Shown piece by piece: positions 1-6,359 of a stretch of DNA of 6,359 nucleotides. Origin of the DNA: Amoeboradix gromovi X-113 (Eukaryota; Fungi; Sanchytriomycota); the NCBI GenBank assembly GCA_018985225.1, contig JADGIF010000585.1:1-6359 (forward strand), read 5' to 3'. Under the pieces are notes generated by a model that saw only the letters and a program-made list of their open reading frames with translations, searched no databases and was not told the origin of the DNA. The translations under genes were made by a program, and so were the position numbers. Position 1 is the stretch's first letter. The number at the start of each line of letters is the position of its first letter.

Positions 1-1
1 T

Positions 2-55
2 TGTAATGTTGTACTAACATCATTACTCTTGTCTATTCTAGTTTTTACAGAGTAA
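2..55 (+). CDS. Possible 3' end of an upstream gene (hydrophobic C-terminus ...CNVVLTSLLLSILVFTE*), truncated by the window edge
   Basis: The frame is open from the edge to TAA 53-55, followed at once by in-frame TAG and TGA (56-61) and AATAAA at 74-79. Only 17 codons are visible, so support is weak. Confidence 0.25.
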   Translation, partial: CNVVLTSLLLSILVFTE

Positions 56-232
56 TAGTGATATTTTATTTGAAATAAAGATTGGATGAAAGAGTAAGAG
101 AATAGCTGTACAGAATATTTATTTTTGAAATTTCGATACAAAAAGTTATTTATTTTCCTTTTATACTCATCAACTCCACAACTAGCTGAATGTCCACTCG
201 CGTCTTAAATAATGTTCCAAGTTGTTACAGAA

Positions 233-263
233 AGTTAGTCCAGTTTTTATATTTGATGTCCCA
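233..263 (+). repeat. 31-bp inverted repeat, left copy (AGTTAGTCCAGTTTTTATATTTGATGTCCCA)
   Basis: Matches the reverse complement of 6227-6257 (AGTTAGTCTAGTTTTTATATTTGGTGTCCCA) at 29/31 positions without gaps. The mismatches at 241/6249 and 256/6234 are both transitions. Confidence 0.93.
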
Positions 264-404
264 ATTGTACTTAATGATAAACAAGATTATTGGGTTTATG
301 CAATTAAAATTTTTTACAAAGAGTGGATATTTTAGCAATATATCTCATGTAATTATAATAAATGGCTTGTTCTACTAAAATCGAGGACTGCTTGAAACAG
401 CGAC

Positions 405-2156
405 ATGCTTGCTAATATGTTAAATTGGGACCAAATCTTAAGATCGCAGGAATATGAATCTGTGACCAGCAACGATCTGCTAGCCTTGTTAAATTCAAAC
501 ACGACCGAGTCGCAGGCAATAATAAGTCAGTTTTATGCAAAGAAACCTGAATTGTTTAATCAGCTATTATTTAAGCTTCCGTTGCAGTATTCAATTATTA
601 ATACCGTGCTAGAGCACACTGATACTACATTTTCGAAGTCTTGCGTGTCTAACCCGAAGTTTAAAACCTTTGTTCTTGATAACTTAACTCAATCCTGCTC
701 GTTGTTAAAACTTTTGACTATAGTGATGGTTGATCAATCGGTATTAAACCAGATTATTGAATGGATAGGCAAGGATAAATTGAACTCGTTACTAAAGTCA
801 CAAGATAATCCTGACCTTCGAGATCTACTAACTTGCTACTTTATTGGCGAGAATACAGTAGGTGTAAATAGCTGGTCTAATCCTGAAAACAAAACATCTG
901 TAGATGACATTGAATCAATGTATCTAATGATTAGCGATCGATTGAAGTTAAAATTTAACTTAACTGATCTAAAATCAGTTATGTTTTTATCTTCCATGGC
1001 ACCAGTCAAGGACATGATCTCTAACAATTTTTCCCAATTTGATTTGCTTTTCAAGTCATTTATCAAATCAAAAGACTCGGAAGCATTGAACATTTTATAT
1101 CAAATACTAAACAACGTCATTAGAATACCTAAACCCAAATCTGAACAAGACATTAAGATGATTCAAATGAAATTGATGTCTTTGGGTGTTGACCAGGATA
1201 CTGCGTTTGATCCTAACGTATTGAAAGAAGATGAAAGTGCAAAATCTATTTCTAATCGTATATCGTGTTTAATCAAGAACTTTGATATGGTTTACTATTA
1301 CGCTCAGCTATATAAACTTTTTATTTGCCACCAACTAAATTCTAAAGCGTTTTCTCTATTTTTGGATTCTATAACTAGTTTAACCACGCCTGCTGCAAAC
1401 CGTAGTAAGCTAGTGGCCGATGGTCTATTGAAGCTACTCTTGGGACTCTTGACCAAGTCTGAAGTGCATAGGTTGCCAATCACTTTCAATATTGCAAGAT
1501 TGCTAACGAGTACCAACCCAACTGCATTGCAACAAGTTCAGCAATTTGTTCCTATAGTTTATGAGCTGATTAGACCCGGCAATGATTATGAATACCAGCT
1601 ACAGGGCATTATGGCTCTGACTAATTTATGCTGCACTGGGGATCCACTAGTATTGGACAAAATATTTAAAGACTGTTCTATAACATTTACATCATTCCTC
1701 AAGAGTTACATGACACATGAGATAATAGAGTTGAGGAGAGTGGCCATGGAGTTGTTTACCAACATGCTTCAATGTGATTCGTTTGCAGCTAATTATTTTG
1801 AGGAGGCTAATTGCTTATATGAAGATGTATTGTTGGTTTGGTTATTTACTTTTGAAGAAGATAAGTACCTTCAGTATGCTGCCATGGGTGCCATGGCATA
1901 TTTGTCATACGCATCGCATATAAAATCATATTTGTTGACTAGATCAAAGTTTCTGGATGAATTAAAAGAGTTAACTGTTATGAGATTTAAAATAGAGCAG
2001 AGCCATTTTGCATTGATAGCTATTCTTCAGAATATGCTGCCAGTGTTGTCTGTGGAAGTGCAACAAGAAATAATCATAATGATTAAAAAAGAGGTTCCGC
2101 ACATGGATGGTAGAATCAAAGAGGCCATGCTTGAATTACTGAAAGAGTTAAAATAA
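405..2156 (+). CDS. SHE4: UCS-domain myosin chaperone, fungal She4/Rng3/Cro1 type (UNC-45 family, no N-terminal TPR), 583 aa
   Basis: The C-terminal half carries UCS armadillo-repeat motifs in the expected order: NRSKLVADGLLKLLL, IARLLTSTNP, QGIMALTNL, RRVAMELFTNM, EDKYLQYAAMGAMAYLS. ATG at 405, TAA at 2154-2156. The N-terminal half is divergent. Confidence 0.85.
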   Translation: MLANMLNWDQILRSQEYESVTSNDLLALLNSNTTESQAIISQFYAKKPELFNQLLFKLPLQYSIINTVLEHTDTTFSKSCVSNPKFKTFVLDNLTQSCSLLKLLTIVMVDQSVLNQIIEWIGKDKLNSLLKSQDNPDLRDLLTCYFIGENTVGVNSWSNPENKTSVDDIESMYLMISDRLKLKFNLTDLKSVMFLSSMAPVKDMISNNFSQFDLLFKSFIKSKDSEALNILYQILNNVIRIPKPKSEQDIKMIQMKLMSLGVDQDTAFDPNVLKEDESAKSISNRISCLIKNFDMVYYYAQLYKLFICHQLNSKAFSLFLDSITSLTTPAANRSKLVADGLLKLLLGLLTKSEVHRLPITFNIARLLTSTNPTALQQVQQFVPIVYELIRPGNDYEYQLQGIMALTNLCCTGDPLVLDKIFKDCSITFTSFLKSYMTHEIIELRRVAMELFTNMLQCDSFAANYFEEANCLYEDVLLVWLFTFEEDKYLQYAAMGAMAYLSYASHIKSYLLTRSKFLDELKELTVMRFKIEQSHFALIAILQNMLPVLSVEVQQEIIIMIKKEVPHMDGRIKEAMLELLKELK

Positions 2157-2157
2157 A
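2152..2157 (+). terminator. AATAAA polyadenylation signal overlapping the SHE4 stop codon
   Basis: AAA TAA A at 2151-2157 contains AATAAA. Function is inferred. Confidence 0.6.
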
Positions 2158-2176
2158 TATGTTGCATGGTATCTCA

Positions 2177-2182
2177 TTTATT
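2177..2182 (-). terminator. AATAAA polyadenylation signal 2 nt after the orphan gene stop
   Basis: TTTATT on + at 2177-2182. The minus strand reads TAA CT AATAAA. Confidence 0.6.
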
Positions 2183-2184
2183 AG

Positions 2185-3210
2185 TTAGCTTCGTTGTTGG
2201 AACACTTTGCTAAAAGATTTGATATCGTTCTTTGAGCGGTGAGGAACCTGTACTCTAGATTGAAGTTGTGATTTTTGAGGCAAAACTGGTAGCTTTACGT
2301 TTGATTGCAATTCGGATCTACGTTCTACAGTATCACAAGTGTGATCTATATTTGTCTTATGGGCTTTAGGAGTACTAGTCTTTTCAACATAATTGATCCT
2401 GTTTAGTTTGCCATTGAAGAGATTATCAATGCATGATAAAGTGTCGTCATCTACAAATGTTTTGACACTAAATAGATGGATTAGTTCAGGAATGAATTGG
2501 TCGGACTCAATTAACGGCGAGAAAGCAAAGCGGATAAACTCCAAAAAGGATTCGTTTTGATCGTAAATCACATCAAACACACCATAAACTGGAACCTTAT
2601 TGGAGAGTCTGTTTTTGGATCTTTTGTCAGCTTTGGAAGCACGAGATCTTAGACTCTGATACTGCCATTCCTCATTTTTAACAGAGTGCTTTTCAAATCT
2701 ATCATATTGAGCAATCATAGGCATCAAGCGAATGTCAGCCATTGCATTTTCATTCATGCCTTTGTGGTCGACAAAAAGTAACTTTATATCCTTCATTGCA
2801 TTTTCGTCCATGCTCTTCTCTTTCTTCTGATTGTATAAATTTCTTACGCATTGCAATGCTAACATTTCCCTTCTTCCTCGAGACATTTTTTTGGTTTTCT
2901 TTGATTTATTAAGATTTCTGGCAGATGCAACTGCAGAATGTTTTAAATTTGATTTCGCTTTGAGGACAGTTGCTTTTGAATTAGCTGCTGCGCTTTTGAA
3001 ACTTTTTGATCTATTCGGGATTTTAGATTTCAAATTTGTTGGACTATCACGAAGCATTGGTGAATCAGTAACTGCTATATTGATTTTTGCATCCTTTGGA
3101 GATTGTAAGACTAAATCATGACCATCCCATTTAAACATAAAGAATTGGTTCACATCTTTCATTTCTACTGCTATTTGTAAAGATTTTTTAATTTCTTTGC
3201 TTGGGAGCAT
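2185..3210 (-). CDS. Hypothetical basic, Lys-rich protein (341 aa from the first ATG; possibly 363 aa with an upstream exon)
   Basis: Long ORF filling the space between two conserved genes, with AATAAA just after its stop. The ORF-track start at 3237 is GTG and the first ATG is at 3210. It has an NLS-like KSKKTKKMSRGRR and an internal repeat with synonymous differences. No family recognised. Confidence 0.75.
   Translation of the reverse strand: MLPSKEIKKSLQIAVEMKDVNQFFMFKWDGHDLVLQSPKDAKINIAVTDSPMLRDSPTNLKSKIPNRSKSFKSAAANSKATVLKAKSNLKHSAVASARNLNKSKKTKKMSRGRREMLALQCVRNLYNQKKEKSMDENAMKDIKLLFVDHKGMNENAMADIRLMPMIAQYDRFEKHSVKNEEWQYQSLRSRASKADKRSKNRLSNKVPVYGVFDVIYDQNESFLEFIRFAFSPLIESDQFIPELIHLFSVKTFVDDDTLSCIDNLFNGKLNRINYVEKTSTPKAHKTNIDHTCDTVERRSELQSNVKLPVLPQKSQLQSRVQVPHRSKNDIKSFSKVFQQRS
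2725..2811 (-). repeat. Intragenic duplication with a 54-nt period: MDENAMKDIKL / MNENAMADIRL
   Basis: ATGGACGAAAATGCAATGAAGGATATAAAGTTA (2811-2779) versus ATGAATGAAAATGCAATGGCTGACATTCGCTTG (2757-2725). Confidence 0.8.
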
Positions 3211-3342
3211 ATGTTTATGCAGCGAAGTGGCCTGCACTTTTTATAGTGAAATAACAAACAAGCCATTTCTTTATGATTGGTGGGTAAATTTGCCAACTAG
3301 CCATTTGAATAATCTAATAGTACATTCTAAAATTGCAAAAAG

Positions 3343-3348
3343 TTTATT
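3343..3348 (-). terminator. AATAAA polyadenylation signal overlapping the MGM101 TGA stop
   Basis: The minus strand reads TGAATAAA across 3350-3343. Confidence 0.6.
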
Positions 3349-4076
3349 CATCGTATTTTCTGATAGGGATAGTCAACCTCTTGTCCCTTTTTTAAGTTCA
3401 AATTAGAAACTCTACCAGAATTCTTATGCGATACCCTGACGTTGGAAGTATTCTCTCTTTTAAATTTAGAAATAAATACAGGATCCCATAGCTCTGACGC
3501 GATTCCTAGGTCTTTGCAACATCGCGTTAGGGCATTACTTTTTACAGATTCTACGGCAGTTCCAAGTGAGGCCATTGAATAAAAGTCATGTTCTCCACGA
3601 GCTTGAGATACAAAAGTACTGTCACAAATTAAAGCATAATCTCTTAATAGCAAAAAAGCATTACCGACCTCCAACTTATAATGAGCCGATCGCGGGACGA
3701 GCTTCCAGTTTCCTGGTCCAAACGCTTCATTTAGTGTTCTTCTATATCGTATCTCTGGCATATATAAAAGGCCATCTGGCCTTAACTCAATATCTTCAAC
3801 TGATAGTGGCCTAGTTAATATTTTACTCACGTCATTTGAAAACCTTTTGGTAGTAAAGCCACCGTACAACTTATCAAAGTTGTCTGAGGTTGAGAAAGTC
3901 TCTTCAGCATCTGTAAATAGCGATTGAATCCCATTCTTTTTTAGTACTTTAGTGCTTTTTAGGTTTGATTCAGATCTTTCTTCTGGTGCATTGTTTTGGG
4001 GTGGCAAAATGCTGTTAACAACTGATTTTTGCTTTCCAATTGATCCCACAATCCTTTGAAATAGTACACGGTGCAT
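3348..4076 (-). CDS. MGM101: Mitochondrial genome maintenance protein Mgm101 (Rad52-family ssDNA annealing protein), 242 aa
   Basis: Diagnostic motifs IELRPDGLLYMPEIRYRRTLNEAFGPGNWKLVPR, ARGEHDF and KSNALTRCCKDLGIASELWDPVFI. The basic, acid-free N-terminus MHRVLFQRIVGSIGKQKS fits a mitochondrial presequence. The track start at 4082 is TTG and the first ATG is at 4076. Confidence 0.96.
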   Translation of the reverse strand: MHRVLFQRIVGSIGKQKSVVNSILPPQNNAPEERSESNLKSTKVLKKNGIQSLFTDAEETFSTSDNFDKLYGGFTTKRFSNDVSKILTRPLSVEDIELRPDGLLYMPEIRYRRTLNEAFGPGNWKLVPRSAHYKLEVGNAFLLLRDYALICDSTFVSQARGEHDFYSMASLGTAVESVKSNALTRCCKDLGIASELWDPVFISKFKRENTSNVRVSHKNSGRVSNLNLKKGQEVDYPYQKIR

Positions 4077-4104
4077 TATCAAACAAGGAAAACTGGATTT
4101 TAAA
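4077..4104. promoter_or_regulatory. 28-bp spacer between the divergent MGM101 and RFT1 start codons (putative bidirectional promoter core)
   Basis: TATCAAACAAGGAAAACTGGATTTTAAA lies between CAT (4074-4076) and ATG (4105-4107). The promoter role is inferred from position only. Confidence 0.5.
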
Positions 4105-5682
4105 ATGAATTTAACATCCGTTCTTAGTGGCTCTATTTACTTGATATTACTGCAATTCGTTTCAAGAGTAACTACATTCGTTCTTAACCAGTTGCTATTG
4201 CCTCACATATCTCCTGAAGTCATAGGAATTTCTATGATTCAAATGGAATTTCTAGTCAACACTATTTTGTTTTTCTCCCGAGAAGGCATTCGTACTGCAT
4301 TATTTAGATCATCTGTAGACAATTCCTCGGAAAAGCAAAAAACTCTCATCAATATCAGCTGGCTATCAGCATTTGTTGGTCTTTTCACTACATTGCTAAT
4401 GATTGTTTATTTTTTAGTGTTTTCAACTGATATACAACATTATACCACATGTGTGTGGATCTTTGGATTAAGTACTTGGTTAGAGCTATTAATTGAGCCA
4501 ATGTTTGCACTTACACAGGCCGAATTTAAATTTAAATCCAGGGTTCTAATTGAGGGCTGTGCTGTGTTCTGCAATGTACTAACTAGCTACATTTTAGTAA
4601 TGCTAGGAAGTACAAAGGTTCCGTCTGATAATAAATATGGAGTGCTGGCTTTTGCTTATGCCCGGTTATCTTATTCCATCACTCTGATTTTTGGGTACAC
4701 AATCTTGTATTCCAAAGTATTATATATATTCAGACCCTCTAAGTTATTGTCTAATGTGTATTTTGACAAATCTACTTTATCGCTAGCCTGGTCTTTTACT
4801 AAACAATCTTTTGTTAAACAGTTACTTAACGAAGGTGACAAATTCATTATGTCGATGCTAGCTACCGCTTCTACTCAAGGAATTTGGGCTATCGTTTTAA
4901 ACTACGGCTCATTGTTTGGTCGTATAATATTTGCACCGTTAGAAGAGATTTTGCGTGTTTTGTTCTCAAAGTTGTTGCTAAACGCCAGAACTAGTAAAGA
5001 GCCCGAAGTAAAAACTAATATTGACAAGTCCCACAAGTTCATTCTGCTATTCTTGAGACTACACTCTATACTAGGAATTTTGTTTATTTGTTTTGCTTCT
5101 TATTTTTCTTATCCAGTGTTGCATGTTATAATTGGTCAAGAGTGGGCAATCAAGGCAGGGTATACATTGTCCTGGTTTTGCTATTTGATCCCTTTAATGG
5201 GATATAATGGAGTTTTAGAAGCTTTTGTGAGTAGTGTGGCTGATCAATCGGAATTGCAAATACAATCCACTTGGATGGCGGTATGCATGACTATATATAG
5301 CATAACTGCATATGTAGCTCTCAGCTTATTGGAAATGGGCAGCATGGGTATAGTTATTGCCAACGCCTGTAATTTCACTTTGAGGATATTGTGGTGTATA
5401 ATGTTTACAAAGAAGTATTATCACGATTTAGGACTGCACAATCTGCTACTAAATAGATGTTTTCCCAACATTATAACAATGGTAGCGTCATTAGTCACCA
5501 TGCTCTATTTACGAATGGAATTTTTAAATTATTACGACAATCCTAGCAAATCTAACAGTGTTGACTTTATACTGAAGCATATACCTACTGGAATAGCAAT
5601 CTTAAGCATAGTTTTAGCAAGTGAAAGGGCGATTTTTCAAGACTTGAGGAAGATATTAAATGAAAAATCAAAGAAATTATAA
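4105..5682 (+). CDS. RFT1: Rft1, Man5GlcNAc2-PP-dolichol translocation protein (MOP superfamily, ER multi-pass membrane protein), 525 aa
   Basis: Conserved Rft1 motifs LQFVSRVTTFVLNQ, ILFFSREGIR, QSFVKQLLNEGDK, NYGSLFGRIIFAPLEE, MGYNGVLEAF and GIVIANACNFTLRI. Many hydrophobic helices and a Lys-rich C-terminus (KSKKL). Confidence 0.96.
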   Translation: MNLTSVLSGSIYLILLQFVSRVTTFVLNQLLLPHISPEVIGISMIQMEFLVNTILFFSREGIRTALFRSSVDNSSEKQKTLINISWLSAFVGLFTTLLMIVYFLVFSTDIQHYTTCVWIFGLSTWLELLIEPMFALTQAEFKFKSRVLIEGCAVFCNVLTSYILVMLGSTKVPSDNKYGVLAFAYARLSYSITLIFGYTILYSKVLYIFRPSKLLSNVYFDKSTLSLAWSFTKQSFVKQLLNEGDKFIMSMLATASTQGIWAIVLNYGSLFGRIIFAPLEEILRVLFSKLLLNARTSKEPEVKTNIDKSHKFILLFLRLHSILGILFICFASYFSYPVLHVIIGQEWAIKAGYTLSWFCYLIPLMGYNGVLEAFVSSVADQSELQIQSTWMAVCMTIYSITAYVALSLLEMGSMGIVIANACNFTLRILWCIMFTKKYYHDLGLHNLLLNRCFPNIITMVASLVTMLYLRMEFLNYYDNPSKSNSVDFILKHIPTGIAILSIVLASERAIFQDLRKILNEKSKKL

Positions 5683-6213
5683 TTGTTTATTATATATCAG
5701 AGAGAAGTATAAAATAAATTCTATAATTAGCGCAACAATTAATGCTTTTATACTAATTTGGTAACTGCTATAAGCGCACAGCGTAACTACAGCTGCGATT
5801 TTTAGTGTCTCACCATAAGTAGGATATTGCCTAGAAAAGGTCAGCAGAGCGTAATAAGCACTGCATATATGTGAAATAATCAAGTAACCATCGGAAAATT
5901 TGTTATTCGATAAGAAAACAAACATGCCCCATAGCAACGCAGTTATTGGCCATTTCCGCAAAGTATCGCCTTGATCGGGATCCTGCACAAATTGCTGGTG
6001 AACCAGCTGCTCAAAAAACAACTGAACGCAAGACATTATGAACCCCATCAACATTGAGATGACAAAACCTTGAACTAAAGAATCCATTTTTACCGGCGGT
6101 TTATTAGACAGTATACCTGATTCTTGTATGATTCTTTGCTGCTCATAAGACGGTATTTGATCGATTAATGTTGACTTGGGTTTGAAGTCTTTGATCTCTT
6201 CAATAGTTACCAT
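5677..6213 (-). CDS. Small multi-pass membrane protein (178 aa) resembling an uncharacterised conserved fungal family (recalled as DUF7719-like, unverified)
   Basis: N-terminal IPSYEQQRIIQESGIL, then hydrophobic segments including VQLFFEQLVHQQF, similar to the L-D-V-L-V-H-x-Q-Y motif I recall for that family. The track start at 6237 is TTG and the first ATG is at 6213 (MVTIEEI). AATAAA lies at 5691-5686 just before the stop. Confidence 0.75.
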   Translation of the reverse strand: MVTIEEIKDFKPKSTLIDQIPSYEQQRIIQESGILSNKPPVKMDSLVQGFVISMLMGFIMSCVQLFFEQLVHQQFVQDPDQGDTLRKWPITALLWGMFVFLSNNKFSDGYLIISHICSAYYALLTFSRQYPTYGETLKIAAVVTLCAYSSYQISIKALIVALIIEFILYFSLIYNKQL

Positions 6214-6226
6214 TTCACGGAGAATA

Positions 6227-6257
6227 TGGGACACCAAATATAAAAACTAGACTAACT
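6227..6257 (-). repeat. 31-bp inverted repeat, right copy (TGGGACACCAAATATAAAAACTAGACTAACT on +)
   Basis: The reverse complement is 29/31 identical to 233-263. It lies 13 nt upstream of the ATG at 6213 and contains TATAAAAA at 6239-6246. Confidence 0.93.
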
Positions 6258-6289
6258 CGTTTTTAAAGAAGGTGCTCCATACGGAGGAA

Positions 6290-6359
6290 ATGCTATCATT
6301 AATAAAAGATCTTCTATTATACCAATTTTCTTTCATTGATTGTATTCCTCTTTTTAAAA
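6290..6359 (+). CDS. Possible 5' start of a downstream gene (MLSLIKDLLLYQFSFIDCIPLFK...), truncated
   Basis: ATG in GAAATG context about 45 nt downstream of the TATAAAAA in the right repeat, open to the window edge, with a hydrophobic N-terminus. A competing minus-strand frame (6357-6247) is also open. Confidence 0.25.
   Translation, partial: MLSLIKDLLLYQFSFIDCIPLFK

Follow-up and report, generated by a model that had tools for sequence, protein, structure and literature searches.

Inverted repeats around a five-gene block of Amoeboradix gromovi: probable termini of two separate copies of an abundant miniature transposable element

The DNA analyzed here, called the window below, is a contig of 6,359 nt from the fungus Amoeboradix gromovi X-113 (GenBank assembly GCA_018985225.1, contig JADGIF010000585.1), in which a pair of 31-nt inverted repeats brackets a block of five genes. 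Our present results indicate that these two arms are very probably the termini of two independent insertions of one abundant miniature inverted repeat transposable element (MITE), whose bodies lie outside the block and are cut by the contig ends. The five genes are ordinary single-copy DNA between the two insertions. We propose that the family is moved by cut-and-paste transposition, which would be catalyzed in trans by a protein of about 580 amino acids (aa) containing the Pfam domain DUF7869 and coded for by full-length relatives, and that insertion would take place at c-AWWT-G(TA) sites with duplication of 3-4 bp.

Two element ends in the window and their family in the genome

The window is one whole contig (C861:1-6359) of an assembly that comprises 10.55 Mb in 1,319 contigs. 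A repeat search of the window recovers the arms at 233-263 and 6227-6257 as inverted copies of 31 nt, complementary at 29 of 31 positions (94%), just as an earlier sequence-only reading of this DNA had reported them; a degenerate pattern spanning both arms matches the window twice and has no match in 200 shuffles. The same reading had noted that similarity drops sharply on both sides of the arms. This is true of the two window copies when they are compared with each other, since each represents a different half of one element, but not of their comparison with other copies of the family, which are matched outward to the contig ends. Window positions 1-263 are 93% identical to positions 208-465 of a complete 465-bp copy (C121:111-575) and 80-88% identical to four further complete copies, while the 133 nt of positions 6227-6359 match positions 1-130 of complete copies with 89-93% identity; the two matches extend to the contig's first and last base, respectively. 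The left arm is the right tip of an element running off the left of the contig, and the right arm, conversely, is the left tip of another that runs off the right. Of the explanations offered earlier, it is the one invoking ends of two separate elements that leave the window which these matches bear out.

Positions 263 and 6227, the outermost bases of the arms, most likely belong to the target-site duplication (TSD) and not to the repeat, which leaves a true terminal inverted repeat (TIR) of 30 nt. The 4-mers adjoining the two tips are unlike, AATT at one and ATAT at the other. The two elements lie in direct relative orientation, with a B...A body on each side. The parts present in the window are as follows.

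1..262, + strand: right ("A") part of MITE copy 1, ending at the contig start; 93% identity
233..262, + strand: TIR of copy 1, 30 nt; the reported arm minus its last base, which is reassigned to the TSD
263..266, no strand: TSD copy AATT of element 1, followed by GTA (267-269); fits the A-end pattern AWWT-GTA
6224..6227, no strand: TSD copy ATAT of element 2, from the TSD model applied to the window sequence
6228..6257, - strand: TIR of copy 2, 30 nt; the reported arm minus its first base
6228..6359, + strand: left ("B") part of MITE copy 2, ending at the contig end

With up to three mismatches allowed, the 31-mer occurs at 1,524 sites of the 10.55-Mb assembly (739 forward and 785 reverse), and a reversed-pattern control at none. 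When 35 copies are aligned on the 31-mer, conservation is confined to the 5' side of the oriented repeat, where two alternative bodies, A and B, are found; directly past ...TGTCCCA these copies continue into unrelated unique DNA. A complete unit consists of a minus-oriented terminus followed nearby by a plus-oriented one, with the B body at one end and the A body at the other, and 38 distinct units with both termini measure 280-596 bp. With a whole 492-bp unit as query, the genome yielded 1,428 first-look candidates; the complete copies that were scored are 82-90% identical to that unit. The units contain no open reading frame (ORF), and the bodies of five copies gave no protein match. The repeat is the TIR of a MITE, and the family amounts to about 760 copies of about 480 bp, or about 3.5% of the genome, with a mean of one copy per roughly 14 kb. 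The earlier reading had stated that a match to the end of a known MITE or transposon would make the pairing coincidental; as the arms match the end of a MITE with many copies, their pairing carries no particular significance.

The position of the block between two truncated copies has a simple counterpart in the assembly. Contig names (NODE_..._cov_0.13) identify it as a low-coverage SPAdes assembly of short reads, in which contigs are expected to break within a ~480-bp repeat. Among the first 100 termini of a listing ordered by contig number, which is no random sample, 31 lie less than 300 nt from a contig start, and 26 of these 31 are oriented out of the element. The short contigs C54, C68 and C104 share the layout of the window, consisting of unique DNA with an outward-truncated copy at each end. 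Since DNA between neighbouring copies of a TIR element is always bracketed by an inverted pair of TIRs, the bracket is uninformative about the genes inside it. We also considered that the contig might be circular, its two ends forming a single MITE, but did not retain this idea: the ends correspond to MITE positions 208-465 and 1-130, which have no overlap, many other contigs end in the same way, and the cargo consists of nuclear housekeeping genes.

Target site, full-length relatives and the DUF7869 protein

Once the outermost T...A of the 31-mer is counted as target, insertions follow the pattern C-AWWT-GGGACA...TGTCCC-AWWT-G. Flanking 4-mers are identical in 14 of the 38 complete copies, compared with a mean of 2.8 and a maximum of 9 in 2,000 shuffles; AAAT, AATT, ATAT and ACAT are the commonest ones. 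Five copies mirror a non-consensus edge base at their other end (ATAG, ATTA, AAAC, ATTG and TTTT). The A edge is mirrored in one of seven deviant cases. The T edge is mirrored in four of seven, by which the duplication is at least 3 bp long. The mirrored TTTT/TTTT copy favours 4 bp, and a nested insertion in C419 fits 3 bp better than 4. A 4.57-kb element has inserted into a copy of the MITE's TIR, where the pre-insertion sequence is known, and there the duplication is ATTT or its inner TT/TTT. The TSD is 3-4 bp long with the consensus AWWT; a former 2-bp model has been superseded.

The flanks beyond the duplication are asymmetric. The A-end flank has the consensus AWWT-GTA, with T in 41 and G in 41 of 42 cases. 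The G follows the duplication at 41 of 42 A ends, compared with 29 of 56 B ends, and TA follows at the A end alone. Every long element, including those that carry DUF7869 or Schlafen genes, has a C beside the duplication at exactly one end.

Long elements were sought as termini followed by a base that is absent from both MITE bodies. DUF7869 ORFs were found four times between exact or near-exact MITE termini and once with a variant terminus, and the intact ones code for 579-586 aa. The elements and the diverged TIR-like copies inside them are listed here.

C426:3777-9320: 5.5 kb, with a second element nested inside; same or near-identical termini, DUF7869 ORF
C915: 5.6 kb, without one of its tips, which is lost at the contig start; same or near-identical termini, DUF7869 ORF
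C556: 3.7 kb; same or near-identical termini, DUF7869 ORF
C419: 3.0 kb; same or near-identical termini, DUF7869 ORF
C567: DUF7869 gene beside a variant terminus
L102:79-109 and L102:5476-5506 (C915), L105:4674-4704 (C556) and L106:1307-1337 (C419): inner TIR-like copies

The subterminal DNA of the long elements has nothing in common with that of the MITE, the TIR alone being shared. C915, C556 and C419 each have an additional, diverged copy resembling the TIR 72 bp inward of at least one of their outer TIRs, and a GAGATAAAT-like subterminal motif is common to the subfamilies, including the Fanzor element discussed below; both are likely candidates for transposase-binding sites. A different kind of unit, 1.76 kb long (C154:76-1834), has exactly the TIRs of the MITE and another interior, encoding a 383-aa Schlafen AlbA_2 protein (E 2e-13), which is a captured or passenger gene. 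C497 (L087) was rejected as a long element, as its ORFs are the host genes Fumble and HORMA.

The DUF7869 protein has 81 matches in the genome, which fall into several subfamilies of 41-83% identity, and 517 homologues in a large protein collection, almost all of them unnamed; the nearest protein-atlas clusters are eukaryotic, mostly from arthropods and molluscs. Three aspartates, D327, D406 and D448, are invariant in 55 aligned homologues with a mean identity of 29%, and D448 is conserved in at least 90% of a 78-sequence alignment. A structure model based on these 78 sequences (mean predicted local distance difference test score, pLDDT, 84) replaced a 5-sequence model (pLDDT 52). It shows an RNase-H-like core: the first aspartate of the triad sits on core strand 1, the second where core strand 4 ends, and the third where the helix following core strand 5 begins. 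In Foldseek the model is matched best by TnsB (E 4.8e-4), IstA, Mos1 and the catalytic cores of retroviral integrases, and probabilities reach 1.0. A sequence search of the PDB with the protein gave no match, and a literature search on DUF7869 found nothing. Triad and predicted fold together suggest that DUF7869 is the transposase of this element group, of the type with three catalytic aspartates (DDD).

Two side observations concern the same domain. The ORF of C556 (L105:2409-4469) codes for a 687-aa protein in which DUF7869 is fused to a C-terminal homeodomain, an architecture that recurs in the unrelated database proteins P0006 and P0008-P0010. A DUF7869 homologue from an assembly of a Desulfobacterales bacterium (P0108, E 1.8e-40) could be either contamination or a real prokaryotic relative.

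The genes between the arms and other explanations of the bracket

The block between the two elements contains five ORFs, with the following positions.

405..2156, + strand: 583-aa ORF, a host gene (label SHE4 unconfirmed); ORF call
2185..3237, - strand: 350-aa ORF, unnamed host gene; ORF call, no Pfam name at relaxed thresholds
3348..4082, - strand: MGM101 (mitochondrial genome maintenance); PF06420, E 1e-61
4105..5682, + strand: RFT1; PF04506, E 1.3e-122
5677..6213, - strand: 178-aa ORF, unnamed, counted from the ATG at 6213; no Pfam name at relaxed thresholds

Two of the gene names given earlier, MGM101 and RFT1, are supported by these Pfam matches; the third, SHE4, is not, as the 583-aa ORF has no Pfam family at E<=0.001 and yields noise alone at E<=1. 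A Pfam search of the window ORFs found no transposase or recombinase between the arms, in agreement with what had been noted from the sequence. Second copies of the five genes were looked for, and the block (270-6220) matches itself alone in the genome, apart from four short, weak matches to 271-384. These positions, which form the spacer from the left MITE tip to the first ORF, have their 72-79% matches on C777, C1082, C464 and C945 and are without similarity to any of the retrieved loci of the genome. The genes are tightly packed: 28 nt separate the ORFs at 2156-2185 and 22 nt those at 4082-4105, and the start codon of the 178-aa ORF (6213) is 10 nt from the TSD of element 2. The end of RFT1 and that of the next ORF overlap by 6 nt (5677-5682). 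No other non-coding stretch here comes near the ~480-bp MITEs in length.

Three other explanations of the bracket had been put forward. According to one of them, the arms are the ends of a single non-autonomous element, Pack-type or composite, that carries the five genes as cargo. Foreign ORFs can indeed be found between such termini, as the Schlafen AlbA_2 gene in C154:76-1834 demonstrates. However, real elements of this family read GGGACA... inward from the left and end with ...TGTCCC on the right, and the window has the reversed order ...TGTCCC, block, GGGACA...; it is the outer side of each terminus that adjoins the block, and the bodies of the elements are outside it. As the adjoining 4-mers differ (AATT and ATAT) and the block is single-copy with no extra copies elsewhere, we regard the probability of this explanation as practically negligible. 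It is also extremely improbable that the repeats are sites of recombination, inversion or breakage delimiting a gene module, perhaps through ectopic recombination between MITEs. Some 760 dispersed copies at 82-93% identity could support ectopic exchange, and the imperfect target duplications in 24 of 38 copies could partly reflect such exchanges, but Pfam detects no recombinase within the block or around it, and many contigs show the same pattern simply as an assembly break. The two window elements are, moreover, in direct orientation, and recombination between them would therefore delete the block, not invert it.

The remaining explanation saw in the 31-mer a long conserved promoter or boundary element marking gene blocks, a role for which MITEs might also have been co-opted. 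Both tips abut 5' ends of genes, 142 nt and 14 nt from the respective ATGs, and in a small sample of flanks with a gene end within about 80 nt, gene starts beside the element outnumber gene ends by 22 to 9; the element also fills spacers in a genome whose other spacers measure 23-110 nt. A bias toward 5' insertion is common among DNA transposons. The motif does punctuate gene blocks across the genome, as had been supposed, but it does so as a transposon terminus, always accompanied by an element body of about 450 bp, target duplications and autonomous relatives. The two genes are faced by opposite halves of the element, whose distances from the ATGs differ greatly, and the target motif AWWT-G itself often creates an ATG. 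This role we consider very unlikely, and the motif that would have been the best candidate here for an undescribed system is the terminus of an abundant MITE instead.

Several points weigh against the explanation by two MITE insertions that we prefer. Completeness of both window elements is deduced from other copies, as their missing halves lie outside the window. An exact duplication is kept in only 14 of 38 copies, and its length may be 3 or 4 bp. Most of the full-length copies are interrupted or degenerate, and the transposase activity ascribed to DUF7869 is a prediction from its triad and modelled fold. The copies studied came from the first-listed contigs and the best-scoring matches and do not represent a random draw.

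The explanation by two MITE insertions removes a false lead, be it mobile housekeeping genes or a new boundary system, and provides a rule for this genome: where this inverted repeat encloses a block close to contig ends, the bracket results from the way the MITE interrupts the assembly. To the earlier description it adds a 3-4-bp AWWT duplication, a 30-nt TIR and full-length copies between the same termini. It further adds triad and fold evidence for DUF7869 as a probable transposase and the separation of the MITE family from a family of Fanzor remnants. The Pfam family DUF7869 would thereby gain a functional reading, that of a DDD transposase with defined termini and target. The load of DNA transposons is unusually dense for a very compact genome.

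Fanzor elements of the genome and comparison with known systems

The TnpB/Cas12f zinc-ribbon domain has at least 150 scored matches in the genome, and the loci with a TnpB domain are mostly without the MITE's TIR. These matches belong to a separate repeat of about 600 bp (L040:1236-1833, which is on C1251, and about 150 other loci), which contains a remnant of about 100 aa of the Fanzor C-terminus (TNB, PF07282), which is followed by about 150 nt of conserved non-coding DNA; the ends of this repeat are not inverted repeats and are unrelated to the 30-nt TIR. The 4.57-kb element mentioned above (C542:92-4657) has perfect 33-bp TIRs, an intact 672-aa Fanzor/TnpB-like ORF (PF07282 and PF12323) and a 306-aa ORF without Pfam match. 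It sits inside a copy of the MITE's TIR, and on the side upstream of the Fanzor gene a C adjoins the duplication. Its own TIR has the tip GGGAC in common with that of the MITE, and 17 of 31 positions are identical in an ungapped side-by-side count.

The Fanzor1 element Spu-1 of Spizellomyces punctatus has 30-nt inverted repeats (IRs) with CA upstream of the 5' IR (Saito et al. 2023, PMC10432273), and the IRs of published Fanzor "ghosts" have 7 differences in 30 nt from those of the parent (PMC10432273), a much closer agreement than that between the TIRs of the MITE and the C542 element. The MITE family might represent such ghosts, that is, deletion derivatives of a Fanzor1 transposon which keep the guide-RNA scaffold. 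Its layout resembles that of the Spu-1 ghosts, with their 30-nt IRs, body of about 550 nt and conserved CA beside one IR (PMC10432273); C/G stands beside the duplication at 41/42 A ends and 29/56 B ends; and the C542 Fanzor element shares the GGGAC tip and the type of duplication, with TIRs that agree at 17/31 positions. However, the MITE body is without DNA or protein similarity to Fanzor sequences: five copies gave no significant blastn match to the C542 element or to the 600-bp remnant family and no tblastn match to the Fanzor protein. It is DUF7869 ORFs that occur between exact or near-exact MITE termini, in four cases, and no Fanzor ORF was found between exact ones. Nor do the MITE ends show stable or covarying RNA structure (mean z from -0.9 to +1.4 on the outward-read strand and from -2.3 to +0.5 on its reverse complement, alifold energies from -1.4 to -8), and Rfam has no match in the window, one MITE and the Fanzor loci, although these are weak tests for a guide RNA. 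The one-sided C is also present on DUF7869- and Schlafen-carrying elements. A ghost origin of the family thus seems unlikely to us, and the C542 element seems to be a non-autonomous sibling that belongs to one class with the MITE by termini and target, and not the MITE's parent.

Transposase-coding, Fanzor-coding, Schlafen-carrying and ORF-less elements of this genome have in common the GGGAC terminus, the AWWT-type duplication and the one-sided C/G flank. A Fanzor1 element and a transposase-coding one thus fall into a single class by their termini and target, which bears on the question of what mobilizes Spu-1-type Fanzor elements. That the predicted DUF7869 D-D-D transposase is the missing autonomous partner of Spu-1-type Fanzor1 elements is a conceivable, if rather doubtful, extension, and the one-sided flank may double as the target-adjacent motif of Fanzor (CATA in SpuFz1). 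If both were true, the nuclease could help to retain elements that the transposase moves.

Compared with Spu-1 and its ghosts, the elements described here have IRs of the same size class (30-33 nt), the same one-sided C(A) and ORF-less copies of about 500 bp that outnumber coding copies; this genome also contains an intact Fanzor1-type element with termini of this type. They differ in having a predicted DDD transposase gene between the same termini, for which no equivalent was found in Spu-1 (PMC10432273, PMC3627910). The short copies here, unlike the Spu-1 ghosts, are without similarity to the 3' region of the Fanzor element and without a detectable guide-RNA scaffold, and they are several-fold more densely distributed.

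Sola transposases are DDD enzymes, and the D-D-D triad found here agrees with this catalytic type. The AT-rich AWWT tetramers flanking our elements are likewise similar to those of Sola2 elements, some of which carry Fanzor1 and which make AT-rich 4-bp AWWT duplications (Bao & Jurka 2013, PMC3627910). The TIRs of described Sola2-Fanzor elements are 12-21 nt long (PMC3627910), in contrast to 30-33 nt here, and the duplication here could be 3 bp and not 4. Zator elements, related to prokaryotic ISAzo13, make 3-bp duplications (PMC10045372), with which our data are compatible, although the mirrored TTTT/TTTT copy favours 4 bp. The ISAzo13-type domain PF07592 gives weak matches in 2 of 55 DUF7869 homologues at E<=0.01 (best E 5.7e-4), and one Atlas cluster combines both domains; the query protein itself has no PF07592 match even at E<=10, and NCBIfam IS-family models do not match DUF7869 proteins. 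Both Sola and Zator are reported to be rare in fungi, Sola very rare (PMC5751038). By this comparison, made with descriptions and with Pfam and NCBIfam models, the element is placed in neither superfamily.

The short elements themselves differ from a typical MITE situation in that their subterminal DNA is not common to the readable full-length elements, with which they share the TIR alone. In other respects they match the class: they are short (280-596 bp), lack an ORF and reach about 760 copies, their 30-nt TIRs are common to longer protein-coding elements, their TSD is short and AT-rich, and they are inserted in the spacers between genes.

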